This document shows positions 13,481-36,483 of a stretch of 64,000 bases of DNA, piece after piece. A program made the position numbers and the translations under genes. How positions within the stretch are numbered: the first letter of the stretch is position 1; every line of letters begins with the position of its first letter. Source of the DNA: Klebsormidium nitens (Eukaryota > Plantae > Klebsormidiophyceae); the NCBI GenBank assembly GCA_000708835.1, contig DF237062.1:62001-126000 (forward strand), read 5' to 3'. The notes under the pieces are model-generated. The model saw only the letters and a program-made list of their open reading frames with translations. It was not told where the DNA came from and ran no database searches.

Positions 13481-15869
13481 ATGGCGCGCAGCCAAATAGC
13501 TCCAAGCAACATTCCGGAAACTCTGGAATGGTTGGATGCCATAAGCTCGTTCCCGTCAAGCCACGTGCCCACCTCCAGCCCGTTCGAAATCTTCTCGTCG
13601 AATCAACAGGGGCAGGATTATCACGATTGGAACTTTGTTTCGAAGCAGCTAGCACCCAGCAGAAAGCACCCGAGTTATGCTGAACATGTTGAGGGGGGTT
13701 TCAAACTGTGCATTGAAGGCGCCGATGCCTGGGGGGATTTCGGAGGTTTGAGGCAGGAAAAGGGACAAGAGCGGGATTGGGAAGAGCATGAGCTGAACGC
13801 AATGCTGGTGAGTGACTAAACGAGTCCAAGTGTCCCTTGTTTTTTACCGAATGAAACATTCACCGGTTCTGATTGGAGTCGGATGATGCAAGCTTTATGG
13901 GAAATTTATGTGTCCTTTGTCTCTCTGATTTCTGAGAGACTGCGAAGGTTCATCGACTATGAATTGGCTAGCTCGCACAACGGGCAAGCTGTGGAGCAAA
14001 ACTTTCATAAACAGGAATGGAGAAGCAACGCCCTTTGGCCTCGAAGCGGGACAGCGTCGAGAACAAGTCGGGCAGATTCAAATCGGTCTGAGTCATCCGT
14101 TCAACTAAATCATCGCAGCGAAGCTCGGCTCAAAATCAAAACAAGCGCCCATGTCACGAAGAGAGTTGGAAGCTCAGACAACCCGACGAAATTGCAGGCG
14201 AAGACGTGGCAGCACGTGCCCAAGAATCTTCAAGAGGACGTGAAAGCGTTCTCCCGGACCGTCAGGGAGCGTTTGGACGCTCTCACACTGGAGCTAGTCC
14301 TGAAAGTGAAAGAAGACAGCATCGAGCCGGACGAGAAGCAGGTCAGTGCCCCCCGCAGCCACCCAGTAAGCCGGAATTGTCTCTTTTTCTGTCGTGCTGT
14401 TGCGAACTCACAAAAGTCGACGCTCTATTTTGTCCGCCAGGTAGCAGCAGCGCGCAAAAAGACTTGCCTTTGATGCAGACGACGTTTGATAGATGTCATT
14501 CAGGTGGCACATGAATTTGGGTTCTCAAATATGACGTCTGCATATGCGCCAGAGCCACGCGCTTAGAACTTGGCTGCGTCAGACACCATCCGAAGAACGG
14601 TTTGCAAAAGCGGTGGATCAGTCTAGGACGTCTTCTCAATTGCGTCTTTTCTCGGAGTATATAGAGGACCAGGCACAGTTCAATTCCGCGAAACAACCAA
14701 CATCTCCTCAAGGAGTCGTAACGCTCTTTCAGCCGCTTGTCTTTAAGCGATTCCCAATCCCCTGCTCTTCTCACGTGACGTCACTCGCACTTGAACAGGT
14801 GCCGGGTGACGAAAGCCGCTGCTACGTTCTGTCCGCGGCCGAGAAGCGGACGCTCAAGGACAGCCTCAAGGCGAAATTCGGACACCAGATCGCAGCAGCA
14901 GACGCCGACTTGTACGAGAAGGATAGAAACGAGCCCCTGCCGCCGGCCGCGCGCGCAGAGATGAAGGCAGAGTACGCGCACGAAATGTACCCGTCGGTGA
15001 GGCTTCGTTCTAAAGAGTTTTTGCGTTTGATGAGGGTTCGTGGGAAACCGCAGGGTTTTGTGTGCTCCGGATCAGGGGTTTAAAAGCTTTTGGAGTTTTG
15101 AAGGGTAGACGAGTTCTAAAGGAGCGCAACGCTTGGATGCAAGGCGAGTTCGAAAAGAGCGCACCGGTCGGGACCTTGCAAGGAGTCTCGACTGCGTTTC
15201 GACATGCTTCTCGAAGAGACCTGTACGTTAAGCCCACGAGTTTTCTCCACAGATTCCGCGTGACTGCGTGGGCGACATGCCTCAGTTGGCAATTTTGGCA
15301 GGGTCTGGGTCCGTTTTTCAAAGCTGAATACTTGGATTTTAGGAATGGGGGGATATGGGAACTTGCGAAGGCTCTGCAAGGTTGGATCGTGGACCCGTTT
15401 CACTTCGTCTCTGCAAGTTCGGTTACACCGTCAACCAGGATGACGTCGAAGACTCTCTCAATACTGGACTTGAAATCCTTCAAAAAGGTCCAGATTGCTC
15501 CGTTTGGTTTTAAGAAGACGTTATCACGTTTAGCCCCCAGACGCGGCCTTCCCAAGTCTGCGCTTTTTTTATCTTGACCAACAACGAATGAAAAGCCTAC
15601 TCTAAAATGCCTACCATTTCGAGGATTTCATATCTGTTTACACTAAGCACGATATGTGGTCCTCTGTGCAGACCGCTTGGAAGCAAGCTTTGGCCACGAA
15701 GTACTCGCTAACAAACAGGCAAGTCAACGACTGGTTCAACAACGAGCGGAAGCGGCGACCGCACCCAGGCGGCGCAGGCGGCAAGGTCGCTGCTGCCGGG
15801 CCAAGACGGGCCCCGCGACGGGGTCCACGTGTTTCATTGGCGGAGTCCGAGGACGACGCTTCCGACTAG
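13481..15869 (+). CDS. Divergent KNOX-like homeobox protein (ELK-like segment plus a homeodomain without the TALE loop), ~288 aa
   Basis: Exons 13481-13807, 14198-14341, 14799-14996 and 15672-15869, all with phase-0 GT-AG introns. Homeodomain: LPPAARAEMKAEYAHEMYPS|TAWKQALATKYSLTNRQVNDWFNNERKRR. It is preceded by the ELK-like EKRTLKDSLKAKFGHQIAAADADLYEKDRNEPLP. Exon 1 is less certain. Confidence 0.8.
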
Positions 15870-17043: not shown

Positions 17044-20000
17044 CTAGAACAAACCCACAACGGCGCCAACGAGCGCGATCGCAACAGCAGCGCTAGCGAC
17101 GCTGGCCACGTCGACGCGGAGGCCGGCCGCGGCGCTCTTCTTGTCGGTCGTGGTGGGCGCGGGTGCGGGCGCGAGCGCGGGCGCAGGGACCGGGGCCGGA
17201 CCAGGAGCGGTAGTGATGTTAGAGCCCGTTCCGGGGGTCAGGCTCAGAATGGAGAATTGCGCGTTGGTGCCGATGGTGCCGCTGAGCCCCAGTGTCTGCA
17301 ACAGGTTGGAAACGTTCAATCAGCATCTGTTCGGAATTCAGTCCGTCCCTAGTTCTTTCCGCATCGTGTGACGCGCGCAGAGCCCGCCTGACTGCGACGG
17401 CCTCATGAAGAATCTGCGGAATTTTCAAGTGCTACTTCGGAAGTCTAAAGTTGATGGGGCATTGCCGAATGGGCTTTGTTGCTGTAGCCACTGGCCACAA
17501 CAGAGTTACTGGCCGCCATTGCTACCAGAGTCAACTTGCCCCGCGAAGATGCAACTCGAATGAAGGGGCGCGCGCGCGCCCCAACCGACATAATATATTG
17601 CCCAGCAAATCTGCCCGATGTAAGGTCCTTAGCGTCAAGCAAGAGACTGCCACTACCAGCATGAGACTTCAGCAGAAAGGGCCTGTTAACTCACCTTTAG
17701 CTCACTGTCCAAGGCTCCAGAGGCGGCCAGCTGCGTGAGGGTGGCCACCAGAGCTTTGGCTTCGTCGGTGCTCTTGACGGGAAGGGTCACAGTCGCCATG
17801 ACGTTGGCTGCACAGCGGGAGCGCATTGTGTATCAGAAACATGTGTTTTGAGTAACGCGTATTACAACTTAAGAGGACCGCGTTGAATCCTGAAGAGACC
17901 TGTCAGGGTCACCACAAGTTTCTCGCGAATCAAAGCACTTTTGTTAGAACGCATGATCCAAGAGCGATTGAATCTAGCTGAACGTGCTTTCCCTTCAAAG
18001 CCTGCTTGTAGAACCCAATTACGAGCGTACTGCAATCAACTGAGATGAGTGTCGAGGAGCCGGGCTCTTTCCGTAAAATGTCGCTCTTGTGTGAGCCCAG
18101 ACAGATCCCGAGTCGTCAGATGAGGATCACTTCAGCTCGCTTCTAAGCAAAGCTGACCGCGGCAAGCTCTAATCCCTTTGCTTTACGAAACATGCGGCCT
18201 GAGAAATTCAAATACTGGGGACTCGTTGTAAAGGGGTTTTCTCGCTTACCTCCGGTGACGTTGGGAGCCACGGTTACGTTCGTGATGCTGATGCCGCCGG
18301 CGGCCAGTGCGTTGACGAAGACACCGCCGGGCGACAGGGCGCCCTGGAGTTGCATGGCCAGGGGCCCGGCCTGCGAGCATGACGTCACCGTCAGTTTCAT
18401 GTTTTCGACTAACGGCATGAGGTCGATCAATCTCTGGTCTGAGAATCAGAGAATCTTGAGGCCCATCAACCGCTGTTATTTCTTACCAAGAGCCTTCGCT
18501 TGTCGAAGCTCGGATCAGTTGTGCTGATTGCAAGGCCACGCAGAAAGCCCGGTCGAATCACAAGCTCATAAGCTTGAACGGTCAAGCAGGCAGGCGTTGG
18601 TCCAAGCGAGTTCAAGACTTTACATCTTCAAAGGTTGAAAGCTTGAAAACTAAGGACGCAGATTCCAACAAATTCACCTCCGTCTGGCTGCTGCTCCAGA
18701 TGCTGAACTGGATGCTCAGGCTTCGTTTTAGGAGGAAAGATTTCAAATGGCAGGGCCGTAATAGTACAATGTTAAGAGTGTAACGCTCACTGCAAACCCA
18801 AAATCTTGATAGAAAGGATTCCTGAGAGCCTCACCTCCGTCTGGTTGCTGCTCTGGATGCTGAACTGGATGGTCAGGCTGGACCCGGTGCTATTGGTCAC
18901 GGCCTGGAGGAGCGCGCGGCGGCGGGCCGGGGAACCGGCCGGCGCGAGCGCGGCGAGACCGATCGGGTCGATGCTGAAGTCCGCCCCGACGCTGTCCGCG
19001 ATTGCCTTGAGTTCCGCCCGCAGGAGCGCCAGGCAGCGGTCCTCCCAGACGGACAGCGGAACGCCCACCTTGGCGATGTCCATGGTGCCGCCGATCTCGA
19101 GCGTCAGGAGCGCGACGGAGACCGCGGTCTTGTCGCCCGCGCCCGCATGGTTGGAGAGCGCGGTCACGATGGCCTGCGGGAAAGAATTCCGAAATTCTGT
19201 TTAGGGCTGGCCGAATTTGATCATCTTGTGACGTTCTTTTACCTTTTTATCTTCTTTGCTTTGAATGTGGATGAGTTCCTCAAATTCGGAGGACCGGAGC
19301 GTCGGATCTCAATCGATCTTCAGCTACTTGGAATGTTATCTGCGGCTCTTACGTGAACTGATACCTAGACTTGCATGGATTAGAATCTGACCAAGGCGTT
19401 GATATTCTTTGCCGCGCGGTCTCCTCGACCGCTTTTCAGGGGCCACAACTCCTCAAAGTTGCACGCTCTTACCTGGTGGTCTGCAGCCGAGAAGGAGTCT
19501 CCGCCTTGCTTCCTGATTGTGATCTTCAGCTGGGTGGTCGCAGAAAGGCACGGCACCACTTCGGTTCCGTCGCTGGTTGTGTCGCCCATGCCGGAAAGTA
19601 CGCCTGAGCAGAGGATGGAGTTTTACCGCCTGAGCCTGATATTTTCTTATTCCGTCTTCATTTTGACAGAAAGTCGGGTCGAGAGTCGTCGGATGGAAGG
19701 AAGCAATAAACACTCGCTTTCTCAGCGTCTTCCCCGTGTATATATGGAGTTGAGTATGCAGGAATCGAACTAAGCAACAAGAAAAACTCTAGGAATAAGC
19801 CTGGTCCCATCTATCACGAAAGCCCTTCTCATTTTCCATACAAGTCTCAACATGGTTTGGAAGAGGGCGACGCTTTGAGCACCCTTCAAAGCAACGCTCC
19901 TTCCCGGGCGCATGCAGCCGGATCTGAATTTAGAGCCCAGGAGTCATGGATTTAGAGGCGAACAGTGCAATCTCTACTATCCGCACCCAGAATCCTTGAC

Positions 20001-23000
20001 AAGATGGACGGGGATGAATGTTAAATGAAAGCAGATCCTCACCCTTCTTGCAGCCATACTTGGTAGGGTCGTAGCAGGAAGTTCCGCAAAGGTAGAGACC
20101 ACGGGGGCAGATCTGGAAAGAAAGGACAAGAATACATTATGTCGCAGATCCTGAAAGCTGAAAGATGGAGTCGACGTGCCTTCTTTGCGCGGAATGTACA
20201 CTAACAGTAGACTGATCAAGGAATCCTTGATGGAGCTTCATCATTCCTTTGTTCCATCCACGAATCCTTAAATAGCGAAGATATTATACCATTAATGGCA
20301 AGCCATCTGAATGTGAGTCTGCTTCCAACAAACCAAACAGCCTACGTACTTGACACATCAAGCTCACTTCAGAAATGCATGCTTCTGCGCCCTTCCAGAT
20401 CAGGCCAACCATATTGAAGTCGAAGGCATCATTGATTCCAGGCACCAAGCGAGGTTTCGAGCTAGCAGCTCCCAGTAGCAAACTGGCAACTTTGACGAAG
20501 AGCCGTTCTTCCGGATGTTTGAGGTCAGAAAGCTAACCTGGCCGTTGAGGCACCAATAGGTCTTCGCATCGTACTGCTGCACGCAGTTGGTCCAAAGGGT
20601 ATCCGTGCACGTTACGTCCACGGACGGAGGCTTCTCCAGGAGCTTCAGCAGCAAAATCTCCTTCTGATCTCCGCACGGGATGGTCTGGGAGCCGTCCGAA
20701 ACGATGCTGCCGAACTCGTCCGGCTGTACCAGCTCTCCGTTCTGGCAGCCGTACGCGTTGGGGTCGTAGCAGGCCGTGCCGCACCGGTTGAAACCGGCCA
20801 GGCAGTTCTGCAAGGGGTTTTCAGCTGTTAGCGGAAGGGCGGCTGACAGGGTCTTGACCCTTCACCTGCCACAGATGTATTGGAGCTGGGTAATGTCAAG
20901 GTACATGAGTATCAATTGTGGTCGTCTCAATGGTGTAACTTGACCAAACAATTCTGCTTGGGGAGTCCTAGACCGACATTTGCAGTCTTTTCAGGCGGAT
21001 CAACTTCGTGCGTTGAAGGTGTCAAGGACGTGAATTCAGCGGCTTGAATTAGAAGCTAAGATAAGGTATTCGACTGTTCAATTACGGAGGCCCTTTTGGC
21101 TATTGCACCAGTCTCCCGGTGCGTTGTACCGCGCCTCGATAAGCAAATCGCAAACTGTCGGCATCTATCACATCCTCTACGGTGTGAATGCGCACTAGAT
21201 TACGAGTCGCGGTCATCCGTTCGCACACGCCAGCAACGCAAGCGGGTAGGAAAGCAAAACAATGAACATCGCGCCCTCACCTGTCCGTTGATACACCAGT
21301 AATTCCCGCTCGCAGGCGCGCAGTTGGTCCACGGCGTCGTTCCTGGCGCGCAGACCGGCGATGTTGGGGCTTGCACGATGATCTGTCCCCTCTGGCAGGG
21401 CCCGACGCTGCTGAGCGGGTTGTTCTTGCTGAGGTCAGGAGTGAGGCCCGTCGGCGAGCAACCGAACTGAGTCGGGCTGGGAAGAAGCAAATTTTAGCGT
21501 CAGTAAGCACGAATGTCCGCTGGAGAAAATCAGAGACGTCTGCTCGGCGGTAAGGGAAAAAGCTTGCCGACAAAGCGCTTTCTCAGCAAAGTCCGCGAAA
21601 TAAGTCGTCCAACAAGTAGTTGTAAAGGTGAAAGTCCCCTTCGTTGACTGGACGTGCGGCCAAATGCGCAGAATGCTCTGATTAAAGCGACACCAGGCAA
21701 CTCCAGGCCTCCAACGAGTACACTAGCAAGCTGGTGGACTCTGAAAGCCTAGCCCGCAAACTGAGGCTCAAAGCTCTCAAATGGCACGCGTTCTCCCTGC
21801 GTGCAAACGAAAGTAGGTGCTTCTGTCTGGTGTTTCTATGCGACCAAGACTTGTTTGAGCCACTCACTTGTAGCAGTCCTTCTGGCATTTGAGCTGTCCG
21901 ATCTGGCAGGCGAGCCCGTCCATGCAAGCGTACGCCTTTGCGTCGAAAGGCTCGCAGTTGGTCCACGGAACGCACTGCTGGCTTGCCTCTGCAGTGGGTC
22001 GGGAGAAGGCACCGGTCAGCGTTTTCCAGATTCGAGAACTGGCGAAGACCGGAACATTTTGCGATGCTTGATCAACAACGGCCATCCTATGGCCTCCATC
22101 CCATCCATGTTTGCAACTAAGTTTAATGACAAGAGAAAAAGCCTAGAGCAGGTTTGTCAGGGCATCCTTGAGACTTGCCTGGCCGCTTTGATCAAGACCC
22201 TGACGTTGATATTCGAAAAGGGACTTGTATGTAAAAAGAATTGCAAGAGCATTCTGCACGGGGCACCAGCGGTTGCGGTAGCTCCCGAAAGCAGGGATCC
22301 CCCAAACTCTGACATGCGACAACGAAGAAGTCGTATGGACTTAGCGACGGAGCCTTACGCGATCTGCAGAAGTCGACGGGCGTGGCGTCGCTGCTGGCGA
22401 CAGCCGTCATCATCAGCGTGTTCTGCCTGCAGGAGAAGGCCTTGACCGCGCCTCCGCTCATGCTGAAGGAGCTGGGCAAAAAGCAGTGGTAGCTGTTGGA
22501 ACCGAAGCTGGCCCCGCCGCACTTCTCGTAGCCTGCTGGGCACATCTGTAGGAGAAAGGAGAAAGGACCGTTAACCAAGCCTGACTAGGCTGCGGTTAGA
22601 CATCTCTTCACCTGATTAACCTACCTAAGTTTTTTGGAGGAGAATGTTCAATCGCAGGATGACAACGAACTCTTACCCTCGAAGGTCAAAGAACCTGCGA
22701 TGCTCCAAGGTTAAGCATATTGATCTCGAAAGCGTACTTCAAACAACGCTATTGCGTTTCTATTATGCTTATAACCTTCTGACAAAATGTCCTGATTTTA
22801 CAAACGCCTCACCTGACCGTCCAAGCACGCGGCGGACGCTGGGAACATCTCAGACGGGCAGTTGGTCCAGGGAGTGCACCTCTGAGCTACGGGCAGGTTG
22901 GCGATGTTGGCGGGCGGCACGACCGCGCCTGTAAACATCTCATGCCTTGTAAGAACGCCACGTGGCATTTCATCCGTACTTCGAGGGAAGTAACGGCGCT

Positions 23001-26000
23001 GAAATACTCTCAGGATTGAGGTCGAGCTTTATGAAAAGCAAAGATTTTGCAAGGAATGTAAAAAGTTGCTCCTCTCCTGATGTTTCAAGATTTTCCGCCC
23101 CGTTAGTTAAAAGCCAGATTTTCATTATGCTTGCGGAATTCCTGCGTGCATTGCTGACTTTCGTCCTCGCAGCCGTAGCCAAAGTGCATCCTACTGGGGA
23201 TGGAGACATCAATGTATGCCTGACGTTTCACGCACCTCTGAACAGCCTGTAGAAGTCCACGTCGTTATTTGTAGCTGCCTCTCCCGTTGCGGCGCTCTTC
23301 AGCCAGCAGCAACCGGCGCGGACGCCGTTGTTGCCGAAAGAGAAGCCGACGCAGCTCTTGGTCGCGAGGCAGGCCTCCTCGCATTGAAGCTTGTTGGTGA
23401 GAACCTTCCCGGCCGAGAAGCACGTCGCTTCGTTGAAAGGCGCGGCGGTGATGTCGTTGAAGGCGAAGTCCTTCTTGAGATAGGCTGCGGGCAAAACACG
23501 CAGATTGGATTCAGAGCGATGCATCTTATGCCCGAGTCGGCATCGGGACAAGGAGACCGCTTCCAGAACACTAAGCGAAGGCTGCCGGTGGTAGATGAGT
23601 GCCCGGGTGTTCAAATTTGTGAAAGCTGCAAGCAGGCTTATGGGGACAGGGGGAAAACACAAGCAGGCTTATGGGGGCAGGGGGAAAACACATTTCGAAG
23701 CTGAGGAAACACGTCAACAGAGAAACAAAGACGAACCTGCCCTCTTACGCTTGAGCATATCCTTCACAATAAGCAACACTCAAGAATTCAATTCTCATCA
23801 TCTCCAAGTTTCTGAAACTTTTCACTAAACAGCCGTGGACTCACGTAAGACGGGCATGAAGTACGTGTCGACGCCGGCGGTGAAGCTGTATCCCGTCGCT
23901 GCCGACCTCAGATAGCAGCAGTCGTCAGAAGTTGCTGAAGTCGCCTGGCCGGTCAGCTGGAACATGATGCACCCAGTGGTGGAAGCGCAGAGCGCCGCGC
24001 ACTGGTCCGCCGTCCTCCCGGCCACGCCCTTGTTTCCGCACGTTTGTGAGGCGCCCGCGGCGGTGAGGGCTACGCTGTCGTAGTCGGCGTTCCGCTGGTA
24101 GGAGAAGCCGGCCGGAATGTCGGCTGCAAAATACGAGGGGGCGACGTTTCTAAGTGAAAGTGACGGCTGTATAAGCTCACAGATAGAAGATTCGTTTTTC
24201 TTTTCATGATAGGGTACTTGAAGAAGCAGATGGAACAGACAAACGCTCCAGGTAAAGCTGCGCGCAGCGAGCTGCAACTCAGCCATGCTAGGGGGCTTTT
24301 TCAAAGCCTTCTGTAAGATATCCTCCTGATAAGGTGGAGAAAATCAGCAAGTGATCGGTCCCAAAAGCTAGTTATTTGAAAAGCGGGAACCGAATCGTCT
24401 GTCGTTGTTGACCAACTCACGGATGTTCTGGCAGATGGTGATCTCAGACCCGTCGGAGATATCGTTCTGGAAAGGAATGAGGGATCCCTGGATGCAGACC
24501 AGCGCCGGCTTAGCGTTCGGGTCGTAGCAAGCAAACTCGTAGCCACTGCCGCACGCGATCTGGCCCGCCGGGCACAGCCTGCAGGGTTTGAGGGGTTTTA
24601 AAGTGATTGCATCAGCATTGTGCAAGTTTCGCTTGCAAGAATTCGAGCTTTTGACTGGTAGTTCTTGATGGATGGGGAGAAGCAGTATTCTATCCGATAT
24701 TGTCCGAAAGTGTCTCCAAGGGCTTCTAAAGTCATCCAAAGTCTCTTATTTTATGGCTGAAAGGATCTAGCATCTAAGAAGGGAGCGAACGACAGGCAAC
24801 AATTCTGGCTTCTTTTGGCCTCACCTTCCATTCAAGCAGACGTAGGCCTTGGTGTCGTAGTCGACGTCAGGAAGCCCGCAGTTGGACCACGGAACGCAGG
24901 GGGTAGCTGCACCAAAAACATGTCAGGAATGGCAAAACGGACAGGAATGTCAGACCGGATTACAGTAATTTCGATACTTGACCAGCTCTGATGTCAAAAG
25001 CATTCTGGCCGGATGAAAAGCTTTTCTATGAGCGTCAGCCAACAGCTTGGACTTGCGAGCAAGAAGAATAAGGAAGTCACGAAGAGCATCGAAGTTGCCG
25101 GTCGTTCCTCCGAATCGACTAGACCGTTTTTGTAGGTTAGATGATGATGCTTCTTCGATCATTCCACACAGGGGCTTCTTTTCTCCTGACTCACCTGGCG
25201 CGCAGTAACCAACGGCAGTCTGGTCGTCGAAGCCTGGCGTGTTGACAAGAACGTTGGCAGCACATGACTGCGTTTTAGGGTTGTAGCACGAGTACGAGCC
25301 CAAGAGGCCGCACGAATGCATGCCAGCGGGGCACAAGTTTCCGTTGAGGCACCTGCACAAAGGTGGTTCAAGTTCCTATGCTTATTCCGCATACCGACAA
25401 GATTGTTGCTGGCCGTTTCTGCTCTGCCGTTCAGGAGATTTTGACTTGGAAGCGACAAGGTTGTGCACCAAACCCAAAGTGCTTTAGAGGGCTCACAACG
25501 TGCTCAAGCTTCACTGACTATCTCGAATCTTGTTTACCCGTTGGCTTACAAAAAGGGGTGACAATTTAAGGCGTAATAATTGTTGAGAAAGGTAGATTGA
25601 AAGAAAGCAATCCAAGGACGAGCTTACCAGTAGGCGGTGGTGTCCCAGACACCGGGGCAGTTGTCCCACGCCAACTCATTGTTCGTGCAGGTCGGGGTGG
25701 TGACGGTTGGTCTCGCAGGGATGCCTTTGACTTTGCCTGCAAAAAAGCAGCACACTCATCAGCTTGATAACAAGGGGAGTCAGTGTCAGAAAACTACAAG
25801 CGAGGAGGTGAAGCGGACAGCACCTCGTCAGGAGCAACATACGGAAACCTTTCAAGACGCTAACTTAAGGAGACCTGGAGTTAGCGCACCTCATGGACTG
25901 GATCCAAAGCCATCTGAATCTGCAATACTGTCAAGACACTGTGTTCTCAGCGGCACTTCCTGGTGAATCAGCCGTCTCCAGAAACATTCCTCAAAACACC

Positions 26001-29000
26001 CTCAATATTGGCTCACTCTGGTCGCTGACCACCACTGAAACAAGGTCCAGTGCGCAGCCCGTGAACCCGCCATCGTTGGCGTCCTGCTCTGAGAAAGTGA
26101 GCGTCGACTGCTCAGCGGTTGCCAGGAACGTAACGGTCTGCTTCTCGAAAAGCATGTTGTCCTTTGTGCGGGTGATGCCATCCTTGGTCTTCAGCGTGCA
26201 TGTGAACGGGACGTCCTTGCCGGGCGCCAGGACGTGGATAAATTTGTCCTCGGGGCCCAGATCTGGGTTCTTGGCGAGGTAGAAGGTGACGTCATAGTAC
26301 GCGCCGGGGGTTGTGGCGAAAGTCTGCGGCACGGCGGGCCCAGTTAAAACGGATCACGGAGAGAGGAGTCAGCTCGAAAGGAGGAACGAGGAAACCAGCG
26401 AAATAGGAATATAACAGGACTAGAAGCACTACCAAAAATGAAACATTAAGCAGTTGCACCAAAGTACAGAAAAGTACCCCAGAAACCTTTTCTCGCCATC
26501 GACGATCCAGTAGATTTGGTTGTAACAAATGTCTCATTGAGGACATCCTTCTGGCGAGATTGACACCGACGTTTGTTGTGCAGAGCAGTCTGCTTAAGAA
26601 GCGTAAATCGCTGAGCTGGACGGATTAATCTATACCTTCACTCAAAACAGATGGTTTTTAAGTCTCCCAGGGGCCGTGTGACGAAGCTCTTCTTTGGACT
26701 CTGAAGGACTCATATCTTCAAGTAGCAAACAGTGCTGTTGTGATGCTTAGAAATTTGTGAGCACAGCCCTACCTGTTTGATCTCGCCGTTCGAATTACCC
26801 GCCATGTCCAAGGACCGAGTGCCAGAGTGGGAAACTGCACAGTTGAACGCACATCCAAATTAAGAAGGAAGCGGCGATGGTCTAGGCCGTAGTATTTCCA
26901 CGCCTGTCTTCAGATGCGGAAACAGTATAATTCTTGATTCAATCTCATCACGATGCTTGTAGCAGGGTCCTCAACACTCGAAAAGCAACATCTTCCAGGT
27001 CCTTCTCGTGTAGCTCCTTTTTTAGCTCGCATGTGGGCGAGACTCACCCCAGTACCCGTTGATAAGGTCGACTGAACCGGGGTTCGTGCTGACACCGTTG
27101 GGTGTTACCACCCAGCCTGCAAACAGATTGATGGAGTGCGCATTAGAAAGCATAGGGACCACGTGATAATGTCAACTTTTTGGCTGAGCAAAACAAGACC
27201 CCCGCCGGCTTGCTCAAATTTCCCCTCTGCACTATGTAAAAGTCTTTGAAATTGGACAAGCTGCAAGAACGCTTGTCCAAATCAGGAAGGACGAGTGGCC
27301 CGCATAGTCGTCTCCGGTGCGACCTACCTTCAGAGAAGCATCTGATTATGAACGAACAATGGCCGGATTGAAAATCAGGGTCTTTGGGTAAGGTGTTCAC
27401 GCTTACATGGGAGTGTTGTGGAGTCAGTGGCAAATATGGTGCTGAACGCCGAGCCCACGATGTTCCTTTGGACCGTTTCGAAGTCTCCGTTGCACAGCAA
27501 GTTTTCGGCCATCGTGTCTTGCGCTGCACCGAGGACCATGCTTACGTTAGCAACCGAAAGAACAAGGTCATTGAGTTGCAAGGGCAGGTTCGACCGAGGC
27601 ATGGAAGCCTTATCTGCTGGTCTAAAAGGGTCTCGACCTAGTACAGAACGTCACAGAACCGAACTTTTGCTGCTATGCAATGTACTGGAGGTTGAAGGGC
27701 CAAGACAAGCTCTCGGCCTAACGCTCGTCGAGACATTGGAAAGGAGCATTGGCGAGCAAGGAAGACGAGCAGCGACAGCCGCCATCTCTTCAAGAACGAT
27801 GAGACCATTGTTGACTTTGACTGGTAGCTGCTTCTCAGGGTGAGGAACAAAACAGAATCCATCTCTTTGCCCCCAGCAACAGAAAAGGGCGGGAGCAGGG
27901 GGAAGTTCCTCACCATTGGAGCATGCGGTGATGGGGGGACCATAGGCGCACGAGAAGTCGGCAGTGGGGTTGTAACAAACATAGCCTTCGTCGAAGTTGG
28001 TTGGGCACCTGCAAGAGTCGCAAGACACGAGCTTTTTCGCAATGAACACAGCGGGCTCGAGTCCGATCTCATTTTAACCAACTTGATTCAGCAACGTTTA
28101 AGAGTATAGAGCTTATTCAACATTGCAAAACAATACAAATGTCTTCAAAAACGGAAGACGCACAAACTCTCTTCGAATCTCGTCGTTTCTTGACGTCAAA
28201 AGGACAAAATTCAGATGTTCAAAGGGCGTTCTTTGCGCCCTGCTTCAATCTTGTCGGTTTTGTGCTTAGCGATCTGACGAGAGCTTCTTGACCAGGTCTT
28301 ACCTTGAATCGCCAATTGGGCAAAGCTTCCCATCGAGGCACGTGAATTGGGTGTTGTCATAATCGCCGCAGTTCGTCCAAGGGGCACAATACTCGATGGC
28401 GGCTGCGGAAAGAAGCAGAAAGACATGCGTCAGCGGCGTTAGAAGCATCATTAGCGGGTGTTGAAGAAGTTACTGAAGGAAGGCTCCTTCTTCTTGCTAA
28501 AGAAGATCTGCTAAACGCGAACTCCATACGGGGGCCGGAATATGAAGGTCGATCTTCCGGTTTTCCAGCTTGGAGATGATTACCGCCCTGCAAGTATAGG
28601 AAGTCCGACTAATGAAGGCGTCTTAAATATCGATTCTTCAGGGTCTTTTGCCACGAATCCGCCGTGGCGCCATCCTTCAGCCGTTTAATAGAATCCCTTA
28701 TGCAGTAACATCAAAACTAATGTATCTGAGGCTTTTTCGGCTTTGGGCTCCGTAGCCTGTTCTGCCTGTTGTGCCCTGGTAACCACCAAACATCAAAGAG
28801 CCGCACAGACTTTCGTACTCCCTACGCCCCTTGTCGCGCACCTGTCTGGCACGGCCCGACTGCGGTCGCGTCGTCGTGGTTGGGGCCGAGCTGCAGCGCG
28901 TTGTTGACGCAGGAGTACGTGGTCCCGGGCACGTAGCAGCTGAAGGAGCTCGGGGGGCCGCACCGCCAGGCTCCCGCCGGACACAGCTGCCAGATCAGGG

Positions 29001-32000
29001 CAAGGTCTCCATCAGTAAATGCTTTCAGGCATTTCGGGTTCGGTCTTTCTTGCAGACACAATGTAAATCAGCCACATTCAATCAGGTGGTGCAGCTCCAG
29101 AGATAATGCCCTGTGAAACTGAGACGTTCCGCCCACCCCATATAGATTCAGGTCAACTCAACTGTGCTCAGCCACACTGAATAGAAACGAAAGGGAACTT
29201 AGCGATCTTACCTGGCCGTTGAGGCACCAGTAATCATCGGTGCTGTACTCTCCGGCGCAGTTGGTCCAGGGCTCAGCGTTGCCGCAGAACGAGGAGGTTA
29301 TCTTGAAGATGATATCCTCCCGAATTATCAGCTTGAGGAGCTCTGCATGAGAGATTGAAGAAGACGGAACGTTATATTGGGAGTTGTGCTCATTCCACAT
29401 ACTTCATCTAGGGTCTGTACGGAGGCAATTTCTGCTTTTCATGACGGCTTTATTATCGAGAATCATGCAGAAGCAGAAGCTGCGGGACGTGAGCATCACA
29501 GCTGATTGTTGCATGTAAGCGAGAGCTTTTACGCTTTCCTTCAATCATCTTTCGCGGTCGACTTGCTCGTACACTGGGAATGCACCACGTTTCAGTAGGT
29601 CGATTTTCCAAAACACCTGACCGACAATCAGAGGAAGGCCCGGAGGCTTACGCAGCTCGTTGTTGGCGCAATACTTGATCTCGGTGGAGTCAGACTGCTG
29701 TTCGTCCTTCAGCTGCACCACGTTTCCGTTCTTGCAGCCATAGGCGGGGTCGGCGTTAGGGTCGAAGCAGGCGTACACTCCGTTGTCGGGGTTGGTGCAC
29801 CGGGAGAAGCCGTGCGGGCAAAGGACTCCGTCCAGGCAGCTGTGCACGTCGGGGTCGAAGTCACTGGCGCAATTGGTCCAGGGGTGGCATAGGTCGTTCT
29901 CTGGGGCTGTAGGGGCCAGGTGGAACTAGGTTCAGCTAATGACTCTTTCTAAAGCATAATGAGCTTCGGTTCAGCCGTCCCGACATCCAATTATTAGGTG
30001 TTCTCTGCGTCTTGAGAATTGGTTCGGTTAACGACTATTCATAAAGCATGATTAGCTTCAGTTCAGCGTTCTGTAGAACCATTTGTTTAATGGCCAAGTG
30101 CAGTCAAACGTGGTTGCTGAATAACGGGTTTCGTTGAACTCATTGCTTCGACCTCGACGCTTTCGGTCTCTTAGCGTGCACTAGAATGCCCAGTACGTAC
30201 CTAGTGAGTTCTGGCTCACTAGGTACGTACTGGGCATCACCAATTGTACTTTTACGATATGTGGTTTGCAGTTTTCATTATGGTCAGTCTAACGGCGGGG
30301 AGACATTGCCCGTGGGGTTCGGCTTCTGAGATTCGACGATGCATGACCTCACGACTGAAACACGAAGACCGGGAAAAGCGGCGGAGGGGCTCACGCTCGC
30401 ACGCGGTGACCTGGGTCCCGTCGTCCTTGTTTGCGCCCGACTTCAGCTTGTGGTTCTTGCAGCTGTGCGTGCCTCCGACGGTGTAGCAAGCGTAGTTGGT
30501 GTGGCTGTTGCCGCAGCGCGCCATGCCGATGGGGCACGCGAAGCCGTCCAGGCAGCTGTGAGTGGAGAGGTCGATGGTCCCGTCTTCGCAATTGGTGTAC
30601 AGAACGGACCCCGGGCACGAGGGCTGGCTTTTTGTAACGGCGGGCTGGATGGTGGTGCCTGCACGCGTCGGATGTTCATTTCAAACAGTTGCTTTTGGGC
30701 GATCGTCCATTTTGCTTGCGTTTCTCATGTCCCCCTGTCTTAATGTTCATAATAGCTTGCTCGCTATTGTCTGTTCCAGGAGGGCTTGAAGACAGAGGAC
30801 CTTGGCTGCTTTTCTCTGAAGCACTTGAGGTGCTCGAAGTTGCACGAGCATAACAAACGCCGAGCCTGGTAGAACAACAACCATATTGCGGTAAAGATCG
30901 AAGATACACTGCAGCGCTCGTCTATCTATTTCGAAAGCCAAAACGCTTCAGTTTGAACGTCTCAGTTCAAGAAAATCGTAGGAGGCCTTTGCATCAGAGA
31001 AGACCCAAGAAGCGGCAGACTGAATGACTTCGCGCCTCACAAATGAATCGCACTGAACCCGACAGCAAGACGCAGGAGCCAGGCGAATCGAAGCTCTGCG
31101 CTTACCTGAAGGCGCGCACTTTTTAATCACAGTTTCGTCCGATTGACCTGCGAACATTGACGGTGGAAGAGAAGTCAGCCGCCGGCCTTTTACTTCAGGG
31201 CCCTAAGAAAGACCTTTCCAACCCCTGAATTTCGCCTATCCCAAACTTGTCTCTCCAATGTCTTCACCGGTCAAGGGAATACCTTAGAAATGACATAGTC
31301 TTATTACGCAGTCATAAGATCTTTCCACGTGATAGCCTACGCTAATCGGGCAATCACTCTTGAATGCCTTTGATTGGATTGGAAATCCCCGGACTTGCAC
31401 TCTTTCTTGAGTGCTAAGATCTCAAAGGCGAGCTTTAAATCCTGACGGGCTCTCCTTACTTCCGTGATCGTTCTTCGCCACAGGATGTAAGTGCTTCTTG
31501 ATCCGCTTAACCACGGATCCGCGCTTGCCTTGCTAGAAATGGTAGATGCAGCTACTAATTACGTTTCCACAGGACCACGATTGTCGTGTCTAAGCTTGAA
31601 TAGACCTACAGTAACCTCTTTTCAGTAGAATTCGAGACGCACCTGACCTTACCAAGCCAGACCCGGCAAAAACCACACTTTGAAGAAGTAAGGCCGTGTT
31701 ACAAGCACTTGCTGGAGAATCAGGCAGTTGGCATCTGGAGAAGCAGGCTGGTATAAGGACGACTCACCCCTGCAACCGGAGGTTTCCAGCTTGCCGTCGA
31801 TGCACGAGGCGGGCGACTTGCCGCCCGGGTTGAAGCATACGTAAGCTTTGTCGTCGCCGCACTTCTGCCAGCCGCTGGGGCAAAGCGCGCCGTTGAGGCA
31901 TTCATACGCGTCCCTATCCCAGGAGCTTCCGCAGTTGTCCCATGGGGTTTTGCCATTGTTGCAGGTAGGGCCTGGAAGAAGGAGCGAGAATTTTTCCAGA

Positions 32001-35000
32001 GAAGCAATGGAGAGAGGATCAAAGGGGCTGCGAAACAATCAAACCGCCAAAAGCGCAGTCGACTCGGAAGCCTTTCTGGTCAAGTTCTGGAGAGAGGCAG
32101 CTTTGCCAGATACTGATGACTTGTATCTGGTTGACAGGCCCTTTTCAACAAGGGCTGTCAAGGGCATAGCTTTCTGCGTTTACTACTTGATGTTTCGACG
32201 AGCAGACTCTTCCAGTTGCTCGTCGGAATCCAACGGGATTGGTTTGCGAATTAAGCCGTGCTTCACTCACGAATAGCGCAGAACGATTGTGCCAATTGCT
32301 GAGCAGCAACCTACAAGCGAGATTGAAGAAGGCATAGCTCACGCACCGACGTAGCAGCGATCAATCTGGCTGTCGTCATCGTCATTGGCGGGTGTCACCA
32401 GCTTCCCTGCATGGCAAGAGTAAACCCCGCCCTTTTCGTAGCAGGAGGTGCCGCAGAGGGAGAAACCAGTCGGGCATATCTGCACGAAGCCAAAATCAGA
32501 GGGTTAAGGAGCAGAAATTAGATAATAAGAGAATTCAAGGAAGGGGGTTTGCTCAGAAGGTTACTTAAAGATGTTTTGGAGCTCGAAACACAGTCCCAAC
32601 ACGGGATTCGAATTCAAAGTGCTTCAATAAGGTAGATCTTTCATCCGAAGGGACTCGGAATCAACATGTGGAACTTAGAGCTGAACTAGCTTTAAACTAG
32701 CTCTAAATTTGGAAGGCGTGAAGTATCTTTTGGTTCGAAGGCCAAAATCGTAGCTGAATTGGATACCTGGCCATTCAGGCAGTCGTACGAATCCCGATCC
32801 CAGAGCCCGGGGCAGTTGGTCCAGAGCGGACATTTCTTGTCCACAGTGATCTTCTTTGCGAATTCGAGGTCGGTGCCTGCAGGGACGAGTGAGACAGGCT
32901 TCACTTTCGGTTTCGAGGGCATGCTGCATATCCCTTGCTGTGGAGATTCACCGAATCTTCCTTACTGAAAAGAGATGTACTAGGCTTTGGTGCGTGCTGA
33001 AATCGAATCGGAGTCTCTGCATTTAAGAGAAACAAGAGGAGACCCCAAGCAGGCTAGCTCTACTGGAACTCAAAGCGAGAGCAGTGCCGCAGCACTCACT
33101 CTTCTTGCAGAAGCAGACTTCTGAGCCGTCGTTCTCGGGGTTGGCCTGCGACACCGGCTGGACCATGCCCTGGATGCACACGTTGGTCTTCTGGACACCC
33201 CTTGGTTTCACATAGGACATGCCAACAGCGTCTTGTCCGCAGCGGCAGAAGCCCTTCATGCCAAGGACGTCGGCGTAGCACGAGAACTGGGACTCGTCAT
33301 GGTCGCCGCAGGTGTCGAACGGGTCGCAAGGAACGTAATCTGCAAAGATTTCAAACTATGATGACATCTCTGCAGGACAACCATTGTTTGGAATGGAAAG
33401 ATACCGGCCCAGGCAGCGCCTGCACTTGAGAGTCCAGCCGCACACTCTTCGTAATACTCAGGCTCCGCTTTTTTGGAACTTCAATCTCGTTCAAGCAGTA
33501 GGTGGACAGAGTTATTTGCACTGCCTCCAAAAGAGGGGTTTGGTTTTGAGCTTCTGTTCCTACGAGCAGCAAGGGAGGCTTAAAATTGGCAGTGGGGAAG
33601 CTTCGACGTGTTACAAAGTCTGGTCAATTCAATATATAGCCGCACAGCTGGCTTCTAAAGTAAAGGTACAGAGGATAAGCAAGAACAGGAGCCGCTTGTG
33701 CAGCAACACAGATATTTGAGCTACTCGAACCACAGATTTGTTGCTAGGAGAGAGCGCAAAGTTTGTGACATTCAGTTCGTGCGCAGCTTCCACAGACTTC
33801 AGTCCAGCTTGGCGATGCTAGGCTGTTTGAGGGCATCACTGACCTTCCTCGCACCGTGTGTAGGCAGTATCGTCGTCGATTCCGGGAACAGGAACAAGCT
33901 CGTTCTGGACGCAGCTTTGGGTGGCCTTGTTGGTGTTGCCTTCGTCCGCCTGCATCTGGAAGCACTTGAATGTCTTCGGGGAGACGCCGCACCTGCAGCC
34001 ATCGGCGTGTTGGTCAATCCCTTGGCTGATGCGTTCTTTACAGCTTGAAAACGCAGGCGATTGACTGTTGTCAGCCCCCTATGCTCTCGCGAATTGCTGT
34101 GAGGCCGTGCTGAACGACGGTCCGGTGACAAACTCCAAGCAATGACGGGTTTTGTTTCCCAGCTGTTGAGGACAAACTCTCAGAAGAGCAGGCCCAATCA
34201 AAGATCTTCAATACAGCTGTCTCAGCAATTGAAAACGGATGAGTGCACTGCCAGAAATTACTTGGGGACACAGCTCAGATTGATGGTTTAGCATCTTACC
34301 TGGAGTATGACTTGGGGCAGAGGACGCCGTTCAAGCTGCATCAAGAGACCGCAAAGGCACTTTTCTCAGAGAACGAGCAACGTGAACAGCCAGATCAGGA
34401 TGGTAAACCAAGCCAATAGTGCGTAATCAGCATTCCACTTTTTCGCAATGAGACGAGAGGCCACTGATGTTTCCACCATGAGGCTCCGCAGCGGACTCAC
34501 GAGTCTCTGCAAGTTACAACTCATGAAGCAAGCAAATAGATGGACAAGGGCCTAGCTCCAGTGGCACGTAAGGAACCACTATAAGATTAAAAGCTGATTC
34601 ACTCCGCAATTTCTACTCAACCAGATAATGTCAGTCGCCTCAAGAATTTGTGCTGACAGCAAGAAGAGACTCCTGCAAGAAACACTGACGTACTTTTCGA
34701 TTGATCTTTCTCCTCGCGACTTCGATTCAAAATAGGTACTCACCAGTCATAGGCTTCAGTGTCGTAGGCAAGTTTGGATCCACAGTTGGACCACGGTGTG
34801 CAATTTTTTGTTCTTAACGCCCTTACAATCTGCTTCAGCCGATCCTTGTCCCACTTGCCCGCATCCAGAACCGCCTTGCTGTAATCTGTAGCAAATCAGC
34901 GCCAAGTTATGTTCTGGCAAGTAGAGAAAGTTCACAAGGTTGACGGCTGATTCATGCCTATTCCGGGTTTGAGGACATTCAGGCCGAAAACAATAGAGCA

Positions 35001-36483
35001 AATCCGTTTCTTAGGCTCACGTTTGCCTTCGAGAGCACTACAATGCTGAAGGGTGCGTTTGCATTCCAGGCAAACTGATGACAGTTGCGGCAAGCAATCG
35101 GCACAAAAGCAGCGGCCTTCGCTTACCAACGCAGTTCGTTACTTGGGAGCCATCAGAGGGTCCTGGAAAGAGAGAATAGGAGATGAGACAGCCCCGAGTG
35201 TATATAAAAGTTTCAAGAAAGGAATAAGGGAAACCCCAACAGGTCTATTGCACCAGCCAGAATTGCAGGGATAAGCAGCCAGATGCATCCTTGATAATCG
35301 GATCTGAAGAATGATTGATCTCCTACCCCTTTATCTGACCAGAATTCTCTTTGAATTATCTCTTGATCAACTCCATAGGGAATGCTAACTGATCAAATTT
35401 ATGTCCATCAGCAAAGCTCCAGGGCTGAGTTGGATCCAGTACAACAGAGGGTGCCTACACCAAGGTTCCCTGGAAGATAGGATAAGTGTCTCACCATCGA
35501 ACAGCGTTTGCACAATTTCGTTATTGTGGCAACTGTATGCTGGGGTGACCCCAGGCGCATCTGCAGCGTCCAAGTAGCACGCGTAGTCGTCCCCACTCCC
35601 GCAGCGGCTATAGCCCAAGGGGCAGAGCCTGAACATGAGAAAGCGTATGCTTAGCACATTCGCTCACATCCAGCCCTTCCTTTGCTGGCCAGTTTGGGAG
35701 GGCAAGGGAGCAAAGGACGCTGAGATTGTAGGGGTGGGACTCGATCTGTAACTAAGAAATGCTGTACCGAGAACTCTATGAGCAAAACCAATTTGAGATG
35801 GTATTGTACATACTCAGTAATGAGCTTTGCTTTTTAGTGACTTCTGTTCTGCTTTGGCTCCCTGACTCCAAGCGTTGAGCGATCAGCCATCAATCTTCAT
35901 AGCAATCACCCTCTCACCTGCCTGTCAGAGATATCTGTGAAGGGATGTGTGGAGAAGGAGTGAAAATGCATGCTCAGATCATAGAGTTTAACCATAGGCG
36001 CGGATATGCATCAGCCTTTGAAGGTTTGCAAATCACAAGGATTTTCACCCGAGTATCTTATGAAAGAGCCTTAGGGTTTTTTGGAGTACCTGTTGATTCT
36101 CAAGAAACCAAGCACAGCGCTTTGAAGGGTCTGCCCTCACCACATCACAAGTAAGGACGTTTAGATCCTACGAAATACATTCACAACCCCAGATTGTGTC
36201 TCAAGGCCGCCACTCAGAAAGGAGAAGACAGAAGGTAAGGCTCTGGATTTGGACAAACTTACACCCCATCCAAGCAGGTGTACTGGTTGCTGTCGTACAC
36301 TCCACAGTTGGCCCATGGTGAACAGTATTTTTTGTCAATTGGAAGGAAATTGAAGCCTGTCATGTCGAAGGTAGCCATGGCCTCAGAAACTGGCACCGCA
36401 GCCAGAACCATCAAGGCCAGCAGTATAGTTGCGGGCGGCACAAGCACCAGCGAGCCATGCCCTGGGTTCCTGGCGTGCTTCAT
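17044..36483 (-). CDS. Giant modular secreted, putatively GPI-anchored surface protein (~2,011 aa, 36 exons): 15 Cys-rich CBM52-like repeats, a DUF642-like galactose-binding-fold domain, 2 PAN/Apple modules and a Pro/Ala-rich stalk
   Basis: Exons: 36483-36263, 35628-35495, 34885-34744, 34335-34300, 34043-33844, 33339-33100, 32933-32767, 32479-32347, 31971-31768, 30658-30395, 29906-29652, 29342-29212, 28986-28842, 28402-28303, 28008-27914, 27523-27407, 27116-27048, 26834-26773, 26323-26017, 25736-25628, 25352-25195, 24906-24825, 24578-24421, 24123-23845, 23484-23236, 22928-22813, 22545-22359, 21988-21868, 21476-21281, 20807-20538, 20112-20043, 19603-19473, 19173-18835, 18433-18250, 17807-17695, 17295-17044. 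They total 6036 nt with compatible phases; the acceptors at 32933 and 18433 are the weakest. The N-terminus has a hydrophobic signal (ATILLALMVLAAVPVSEA) and the C-terminus is hydrophobic (VASAAVAIALVGAVVGLF*). Domain names come from remembered family consensus, not a search. Confidence 0.85.
18678..18722 (-). pseudogene. Near-intact in-frame copy of the 3' end of surface-protein exon 33, with GT donor
   Basis: Copy SLSIQFSIWSSSQTE|gtgaa versus the real SLTIQFSIQSSNQTE|gtgag; offset 157 bp. Confidence 0.85.
23236..24123 (-). other. Two tandem PAN/Apple-like modules, each a single phase 1-1 exon
   Basis: TADQCAALCASTTGCIMFQL..DDCCYLRS and NKLQCEEACLATKSCVGFSF..GCCWLKS match the C-x3-C-x5-C..C-x-LKS core. 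Confidence 0.8.
23629..23690. repeat. 31-bp intronic tandem duplication (1 mismatch)
   Basis: CAAGCAGGCTTATGGGG(A/G)CAGGGGGAAAACA x2. Confidence 0.95.
26017..27523 (-). other. DUF642-like (galactose-binding-like fold) domain, exons 16-19 of the surface protein
   Basis: NLLCNGDFE..LPCWVV..GSVDLI..SLDMAG..GEIKQTFATTPGAYYDVTFYLA..TLTFS..GCALDLVSV follows the NGxFE..W.V...VD...LDL..G.I.QT pattern of this fold. Confidence 0.7.
30186..30237. repeat. Perfect 23-bp inverted repeat with a 6-nt loop (intronic)
   Basis: ATGCCCAGTACGTACCTAGTGAG-ttctgg-CTCACTAGGTACGTACTGGGCAT. Confidence 0.95.

Follow-up and report, generated by a model that had tools for sequence, protein, structure and literature searches.

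The 64,000-nucleotide stretch of the Klebsormidium nitens genome considered here (contig DF237062.1 of assembly GCA_000708835.1, positions 62,001 to 126,000 of the forward strand; hereafter "the window") carries at 13481-15869, on the + strand, a homeobox gene that we regard, with a probability of roughly 0.85 and on the basis of sequence comparisons, as a KNOX1-derived paralog of the Klebsormidium lineage in which the three-residue loop of the TALE homeodomains has been lost. A first-pass annotation of the same DNA had proposed a KNOX-derived local paralog with a lost loop, and this proposal is supported by exon homology, by intron positions, by the residues E52 and M16, by phylogenetic trees and by tandem synteny with a KNOX gene (kfl00113_0180) that starts at position 42546, 26.7 kb downstream of the candidate and on the same strand.

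The three-residue loop is treated as a fixed signature that splits the homeodomains of eukaryotes into TALE and non-TALE, and the split is dated to the last eukaryotic common ancestor. The gene described here would imply that a feature held to be constant can disappear while the gene that carried it survives, and that length-based classification can misplace genes, since a gene of KNOX ancestry lost the loop yet was kept. The presence of parent and derivative side by side in one genome amounts to a natural experiment on the loop, on the WW pair of helix 1 and on residue I50. Loop loss from a KNOX gene is, moreover, now a documented mechanism that could account for a published puzzle and thereby make the puzzle testable. 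Joo et al. (2018, PMC6219170) count Klefl00113_0160 as one of the 26 homeobox genes of K. nitens and leave the columns for TALE, class, domain and intron empty. We found no other naming of the candidate in the papers searched, and a non-exhaustive literature search returned no described loss of the TALE loop; the candidate appears to be new as a KNOX-family derivative that fails the defining TALE feature.

The candidate gene and its exons

The interval coincides in all its coordinates with the annotated coding sequence (CDS) of KFL_001130160 (kfl00113_0160), which specifies a protein of 288 amino acids (aa) from 4 exons, and a word search with the candidate returned the corresponding public protein (record P0001, 288 aa). 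The exons are as follows, a slash marking an exon border here and below:

13481..13807, + strand: exon 1, 109 aa; the C-terminal half contains an eroded KNOX1-like stretch (RKHPSYAEHV.., ~13655-13735)
14198..14341, + strand: exon 2, 48 aa; a remnant of the C-terminal half of KNOX2 (..QEDVKAFSRTVRERLDAL..), followed by an acidic linker
14799..14996, + strand: exon 3, 66 aa; an ELK-like helix and homeodomain residues 1-27, without the 3 TALE residues; the end reads ..MYPS/gtgagg
15672..15869, + strand: exon 4, 65 aa and stop; homeodomain residues 28-60 (helices 2 and 3, WFNNERKRRP)

All borders are of the GT/AG type and all introns are in phase 0. Exon 1 ends at the position where KNOX2 starts (ELNAML/gt, with the donor gtgagt), the acceptor of exon 2 (ttgcag/) is kept in an orthologue on a Logan contig (L002), and exon 4 continues downstream of the homeodomain into a Gly/Ala/Pro/Arg-rich tail with an acidic end. 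A longer version of exon 2 (13937-14341, 135 aa) was rejected; both the public model and the L002 orthologue begin at 14198, and the start at 13937 is unsupported because the L002 match begins at the 14198-type exon start. The protein is about half the length of the parent-type KNOX protein and is faster evolving.

A homeodomain of typical length

Counted back from W48, the candidate homeodomain spans 17 residues from L8 to Y25, as against 20 in the neighbouring KNOX gene, and it is therefore of the typical 60-residue length, 3 below that of TALE domains, just as the first-pass annotation had read from the distance between LP and YP. The three extra residues by which TALE domains are recognized, between positions 23 and 24, are absent, and every alignment opens a gap at the loop. 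The domain keeps L8-P9 and Y25-P26-S27. Its other departures from the TALE pattern had likewise been read correctly: positions 19-20 are E-Y rather than the W-W of helix 1, and the recognition helix runs W48 F49 N50 N51 E52 R53 K54 R55 (WFNNERKR), with N50 where TALE proteins carry I50. To these can be added R56-P57 in place of the H56-W57 of KNOX. The intron that had been placed right after YPS lies there, directly after Y25-P26-S27 (27/28) and in phase 0, matching in place and phase the neighbour's intron after PYPA.

The general profiles are less telling about class. On P0001 the Pfam profile Homeodomain (PF00046) scores 33.8 bits and Homeobox_KN (PF05920) 33.0 bits, the cut-off of the latter being 24, and since PF00046 scores 33.8 against 33.0 the Homeobox_KN match does not by itself discriminate class; exon 4 alone reaches 26.1 bits with Homeobox_KN, again above the cut-off. 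The profile check that had been suggested for this gene thus came out divided, with Homeobox_KN above its cut-off and ELK and KNOX2 without a match. A sequence search of the PDB did not tell TALE from non-TALE (SIX1 21.6, CDX1 19.3, Meis 19.1 bits).

In the AlphaFold model, residues 201-250 have a predicted local distance difference test (pLDDT) above 90 and the three helices occupy 206-218, 224-233 and 238-251, the third ending before P253; the modelled homeodomain superposes on those of AbdB, MATa1, Nanog and engrailed at ~1.1-1.9 Å. The model has the 60-residue three-helix fold and the standard loop between helix 1 and helix 2 of a typical homeodomain. Long helices (pLDDT 82-93) are also predicted for the ELK region and the KNOX2 remnant, which is not independent support for their identity because the alignment behind the model holds KNOX proteins.

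Orthologues and conservation

A HMMER search with P0001 of 1.84 billion representative proteins gave 58 matches at E<=0.001. Four of the 58 are fragments of orthologues: exons 1 and 3 (P0012 and P0003) come from the Logan contig L002, which is syntenic with the window, another exon 3 (P0010) from a metagenome contig of JGI (L003/L008), and an exon 4 (P0017) from three more contigs of Logan (L004-6). KNOX proteins account for 18 of the matches and range from the chlorophyte Ostreobium through Spirogloea and lycophytes up to angiosperms; phmmer aligns P0001 to them colinearly over the C-terminal half of KNOX2, ELK and the whole homeodomain, with one gap of 3 residues at the loop. Among the matches that were traced to a source, or that can be recognized as KNOX from their sequence, no plant homeodomain class other than KNOX was found. 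A word search with exon 3 alone returned nothing.

All the orthologues keep the pattern LPxAAxAxMxAEYAxxxYPS followed by a gtgag donor, as well as WFNNERKRRP. Exon 3 is of the same length in L002, L008 and L004, such that the short loop is kept in four independent assemblies, that of K. nitens included, and the recovered exons in K. nitens, L002, L008 and L004-6 are all open with intact splice sites. Between K. nitens and L002, the synonymous divergence (dS) is 0.43 and the ratio of nonsynonymous to synonymous divergence (dN/dS) is 0.60 in exon 1, 0.36 in exon 2, 0.41 in exon 3 and 0.25 in exon 4, or 0.45 pooled. The candidate has changed faster than its parent, as can be seen in the comparison of K. 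nitens with L008, where exon 3 is identical at 28/52 positions as against 41/55 for KNOX and the C-terminal half of the homeodomain at 18/33 as against 26/33. Relative to L008 (4544-4732), K. nitens (14198-14341) and L002 (4337-4480) share a deletion of 8 residues in the N-terminal half of KNOX2, and because this deletion is common to these two and not to L008, the erosion of MEINOX was stepwise and followed the loss of the loop. Judged from these comparisons, the gene is intact and has been under moderate purifying selection since the loop deletion, and the deletion is older than the divergence of three or more of the lineages sampled.

Homology to KNOX genes exon by exon

The exons of the candidate were aligned locally (Smith-Waterman) to those of the neighbouring KNOX gene and the scores compared with those of 5000 shuffles. 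Exon 3 scores 54, with one gap of 3 residues, against 22 +/- 4.3 for the shuffles, none of which is as high (0/5000; z ~7), and exon 4, which holds helices 2 and 3, scores 73 against 21 +/- 4.3 (0/5000); by BLASTP exon 4 is identical to its counterpart at 15/25 positions (E=3e-8). The result is marginal for exon 2 (31 against 22 +/- 4.2, with 222/5000 shuffles as high, p ~0.04) and at the level of chance for exon 1 (25 against 23.5 +/- 4.0; 1698/5000). In K. nitens, then, the similarity to the neighbour fades with distance from the homeodomain.

The metagenome orthologue (L003/L008) is less changed than the K. nitens copy. Its exon 3 (P0010) matches KNOX exon 3, both that on the same contig and that of K. 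nitens, at E=1e-11 in BLASTP, with 39-40% identity over 55-56 residues; the alignment covers ELK and the N-terminal half of the homeodomain, and its sole gap is one of 3 residues directly before YPS. Exon 1 of L008 matches KNOX exon 1 at E=1e-5, from the KNOX1 block to the common exon end (..DQLM/ as against ..DRLM/), with 0/5000 shuffles as high, and the likeness of exon 1 of L002 to KNOX1 has E=0.004. For exon 2, the shuffle tests give ~0.01 for L002 and 0/5000 for L008, where the exon starts EVTY.. as against EVTC.. in KNOX. The KNOX2-like remnant of the first-pass annotation is thus marginal within the window and clear through the orthologues. Profile-profile alignment (hhalign) onto nine full-length KNOX proteins brings the exon 1 profile to the KNOX1 block (P=0.028) and the exon 2 profile to the C-terminal half of KNOX2 (P=0.027). 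The Pfam KNOX2 profile scores 13.9 bits on exon 2 of the L008 orthologue (E=0.039), which is below its cut-off; a MEINOX in the sense of Pfam KNOX1 (PF03790) plus KNOX2 (PF03791) is not detected in the candidate, whose homology in this part emerges only when the orthologues are brought into pairwise or profile comparisons.

The ELK-like segment aligns significantly to KNOX exon 3 and finds no match with the Pfam ELK profile. The same profile is silent on the genuine KNOX neighbour, and the ungapped alignment from ELK to the homeodomain is significant for KNOX proteins. Since the exons match exon by exon, the three introns of the candidate correspond to the three KNOX introns; all 3 of the 3 are at KNOX positions and in phase 0, namely after an FM-type motif at the start of KNOX2, before ELK and at 27/28 of the homeodomain. 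Table S2 of PMC6219170 gives each of the two K. nitens KNOX genes a homeodomain intron at 27/28.

Phylogenetic position

The spliced K. nitens protein entered the analysis as the public record P0001, and for the neighbour and the orthologues each exon was treated separately, with 55 columns for ELK and homeodomain residues 1-27 and 33 columns for homeodomain residues 28-60. In each exon tree the candidate clade and the pair of Klebsormidium KNOX sequences are separated from the 18 other KNOX proteins by a branch with support of 94/90 and 94/86, respectively. When rooted on the KNOX protein of the chlorophyte Ostreobium (P0056), the candidate and the Klebsormidium KNOX form a clade inside the streptophyte KNOX proteins; the unrooted three-group tree of exon 3 is uninformative on sister relations, and the reading depends on the P0056 root. 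Two residues, E52 and M16, are confined to the candidate clade and kfl00113_0180, being absent from the 18 other KNOX proteins and from the second K. nitens KNOX. The NERKR of helix 3, which had been described as unusual and common to the KNOX gene ~27 kb away, is indeed present in both genes (the measured distance being 26.7 kb), and position 52 is Q in all 18 other KNOX proteins retrieved. V45 was also considered as a shared derived state and was dropped, since the second K. nitens KNOX gene carries V45 too.

In a tree of the 88 homeodomains among the matches, from which the loop columns had been removed, P0001 falls in a group of 27 domains with support of 98/98 that consists entirely of TALE domains; the 47 non-TALE domains of the set, which come from outside the plant non-TALE classes, all lie elsewhere. 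The firm placement in a non-TALE class that had been named beforehand as the outcome unfavourable to KNOX ancestry did not appear.

Two proteins of metagenome contigs in ENA, P0007 and P0009, contain several homeodomains each and mix TALE-length domains with similar ones of typical length that have NPYPT and helices of the WFNNERKKRK type. Their sequences suggest that a three-residue loop has been gained or lost elsewhere too.

Alternative explanations

A number of observations weigh against KNOX ancestry followed by loss of the loop, or make it less secure. The exon trees are short, at 55 and 33 columns taken separately, the placement in them could be distorted because the branch of the candidate is very long, and the trees, that of the homeodomains included, are without the plant non-TALE classes (WOX, HD-ZIP, PINTOX and others). 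The Homeodomain and Homeobox_KN profiles score equally on P0001, and Pfam ELK, KNOX1 and KNOX2 have no match at E<=10 in P0001 or its exons. The KNOX1 remnant is at chance level in K. nitens (E=0.18; 1698/5000 shuffles), BLASTP of exons 2 and 3 of K. nitens against the neighbour's exons gave nothing significant, and the hhalign probabilities are low, at P ~0.03 each. No transcript of the candidate was found, the contigs that carry the gene being all genomic, and the gene is not named in the supplements of a K. nitens RNA-seq paper.

The short loop might be an artefact of gene modelling or assembly, in so far as the gene is a predicted model and an alternative model of exon 2 differed from the annotation. 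The gap lies, however, within one uninterrupted exon, 3-4 codons before the donor, and the length of this exon is the same in four independent assemblies, all of which have gtgag donors after YPS and cag acceptors. The nine extra nucleotides (nt) that a cDNA might have been expected to reveal are not to be had: no in-frame alternative donor or acceptor adds 9 nt, additions would land after position 27 and so outside the loop, and the gap inside the contiguous exon is conserved in the four assemblies. An artefact is thus refuted at the level of the DNA, and we give it practically no credence. It would also be conceivable that the gene belongs to an old non-TALE homeobox class, for example one like PINTOX, and merely happens to be near a KNOX gene, its KNOX-like traits being convergent. 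The 60-residue length and a Pfam Homeodomain score as high as that for Homeobox_KN speak for it; YPS at 25-27 occurs in PRD-like and SIX domains as well, PINTOX, although non-TALE, has its intron position in common with KNOX (Mukherjee 2009), and the gene stands unclassified among the non-TALE genes in Joo 2018. Yet the similarity to KNOX reaches beyond the homeodomain, to ELK (E=1e-11), KNOX1 (E=1e-5) and KNOX2, and it is accompanied by three matching introns and tandem synteny; N51 is retained, whereas N51D defines PINTOX; no protein of the WOX, HD-ZIP or PINTOX type is among the checked matches of the whole-library search; and the loop-free homeodomain tree groups the candidate with TALE domains only. 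Membership in such a class is largely refuted already and seems to us very improbable.

The remaining alternatives accept the KNOX origin and differ in what has become of the gene. It could be a decaying duplicate without a function of its own, for which the loop deletion was one of many disabling changes. The state of the K. nitens copy might be so understood, with its MEINOX at chance level, its 8-residue deletion in KNOX2, its non-basic N-terminal arm and D47, a dN/dS of 0.60 in exon 1, an evolution faster than that of the KNOX parent (28/52 as against 41/55 identities to L008 in exon 3), and contigs that are all genomic with no transcript found. Decay would not be expected, on the other hand, to leave all four exons of K. 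nitens and L002 open with canonical splice sites, or the recovered exons of L008 and L004-6 open, at divergences from dS 0.43 to saturation; the homeodomain exons have dN/dS of 0.25-0.41, and no copy departs from the short loop or from WFNNERKRRP, with the DNA-contact residues W48, F49, N51 and R53 kept. We consider mere decay improbable. Somewhat less improbable, though still unlikely in our view, is that the protein acts as a titrating partner or competitor in the manner of the mini-KNOX proteins KNATM and PTS, binding BELL/GLX proteins or the KNOX parent through its KNOX2 and ELK helices. These helices (the C-terminal half of KNOX2 and ELK) are the best kept parts outside the homeodomain and are modelled at pLDDT 82-93, a value that KNOX rows in the underlying alignment keep from being independent; K. 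nitens has a weakened basic arm, and Mukherjee 2009 describes such competition for PTS, a KNOX protein without a homeodomain. A pure titrator could dispense with the recognition helix, however, and it is the exon for this helix that is most constrained (dN/dS 0.25), while the KNOX1 half is the most eroded part of MEINOX.

Proposed origin and possible functions

The candidate most probably arose along the following lines. Tandem duplication of a KNOX1-class gene in the Klebsormidium lineage produced it, and it keeps an eroded KNOX layout consisting of a KNOX1 remnant, the C-terminal half of KNOX2, an ELK-like helix and the homeodomain, with introns at all three KNOX sites. The TALE loop of three residues that joins helix 1 to helix 2 was then lost through a deletion of 9 nt, and substitutions turned the WW of helix 1 into (A/E)-Y, I50 into N and H56-W57 into R-P. 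The domain, to judge from the model, would fold as an ordinary three-helix homeodomain. As W48, F49, N51, R53, K54 and R55 are kept, the protein is likely to bind DNA, and the combination of N50 and R56-P57 with D47 (K. nitens, L002) and the non-basic N-terminal arm (K. nitens) would give it a shifted, and probably weaker, site preference compared with KNOX. MEINOX, the KNOX surface for BELL partners, is strongly eroded in K. nitens, and the usual partnership is therefore probably weakened or changed. We infer from the sequence that the candidate might be a neo- or sub-functionalised, KNOX-derived transcription factor or modulator; this functional part of the interpretation is tentative, and we would put it somewhat below even odds.

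The loop as a partner-binding surface is established for the PBC proteins of animals and not for the KNOX proteins of plants. The rationale of the first-pass annotation, in which loss of the loop was connected with an altered partner and DNA specificity, is an analogy, because the role of the loop is known from those animal proteins.

A bolder idea is that the TALE KNOX and its loop-less derivative make up a newly evolved TALE/non-TALE heterodimer module, such as is known from the mating-type loci of fungi. We regard this as a long shot. If it were true, the loop-less protein would pair with its KNOX parent or with BELL/GLX and would form a switch peculiar to the lineage, perhaps one that operates in a cryptic sexual cycle or a stress cycle of Klebsormidium, and the module would illustrate a route from KNOX genes to old non-TALE classes with a KNOX intron, such as PINTOX.

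Relation to known systems

The closest likeness is to the KNOX genes of class I, represented by kfl00113_0180 and by KN1/STM of land plants, with which the candidate shares the domain order (KNOX1, KNOX2, ELK or an ELK-like segment, homeodomain), the three intron positions and the WF-N-RKR core of helix 3; with kfl00113_0180 in particular it also shares E52, M16 and tandem linkage. It differs from them in that it is without the loop and without W19-W20, has N50 for I50 and R56-P57 for H56-W57, and has a MEINOX below the level of Pfam detection. The mini-KNOX proteins (KNATM, and tomato PTS/TKD1) are similar in that they, too, descend from KNOX in truncated or degenerate form and may have a modulating role in the KNOX/BELL network, but they keep MEINOX without a homeodomain, whereas the candidate keeps the homeodomain and the ELK-like helix with a degraded MEINOX. 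PINTOX (OCP3), which is known here by description, resembles the candidate in having a homeodomain of typical length with an intron at the KNOX-type position (Mukherjee 2009); it differs in its N51D and its upstream basic PINTOX domain, in place of which the candidate has N51, an ELK-like helix and exon-wise homology to KNOX. The fungal mating-type pairs (MATa1/alpha2 and bE/bW) likewise link homeodomain genes of TALE and non-TALE length in the genome. Their members, however, belong to ancient unrelated classes and are usually divergently transcribed, while the candidate is a recent derivative of a TALE gene and lies on the same strand as that gene.

The neighbouring KNOX gene and the arrangement of the locus

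Two other genes of the window bear on the history of the pair:

42546..46056, + strand: kfl00113_0180, the parent-type gene of the KNOX1 class with a TALE homeodomain; exons 42546-43268, 44157-44354, 44875-45108 and 45741-46056
17044..36483, - strand: a large gene for a surface protein, located between the paralogs in K. nitens and separate from the homeobox pair

The exons of kfl00113_0180 match Pfam KNOX1 (27 bits), KNOX2 (26.8 bits) and Homeobox_KN (38.7 bits). Frangedakis et al. (PMC5637896) treated the gene as a member of KNOX, and Joo et al. 2018 (Table S2; PMC6219170) placed it in class KNOX1.

Contig L008, which comes from a metagenomic relative, carries both homeobox genes in direct tandem on the same strand, with ~3.4 kb between them, and is colinear with the window in the order Cpn60A, candidate, KNOX and next gene. 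Tandem duplication is the simplest origin of the candidate and KNOX pair. In L001 and L002 a called gene with Carb_bind/DUF642 matches comes after the candidate. The giant surface-protein gene, which parts the two homeobox genes in K. nitens and L002, has no counterpart in L008 at 6800-10000, and it was either inserted into the tandem pair or lost from it.

Intron 1 of the KNOX gene holds, at window positions 43860-44110, two degenerate copies of KNOX exon 2. The public KNOX model of 585 aa (Joo 2018, Table S2) adds intron-derived sequence, including the first of these copies, between ..GLDKVM and EVTCQQ.. and is probably over-long, because the L008 orthologue supports a direct ..DRLM/EVTC.. 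junction. The over-long model may explain the poor scoring of kfl00113_0180 for the KN-B domain. Within intron 2 of the same gene, at window positions 44779-44798, there is an assembly gap of 20 N flanked by a short direct repeat; a hidden exon is possible there, and the L008 orthologue has none.

Similar copies of exons can be recognized on L008. In the intron just upstream of the real exon 3 of the candidate orthologue (5871-6056), at 5395-5809, the 5' end portion of that exon recurs as three degenerate copies in tandem (AMTAG[DN]KKAL..), and degenerate copies of KNOX exon 4 (..LELQQV..FINGR..) occur at 13394-13450 and 13847-13933, upstream of the real exon 4 (14008-14304). Local tandem duplication of exon-sized segments seems to be common at both homeobox genes.

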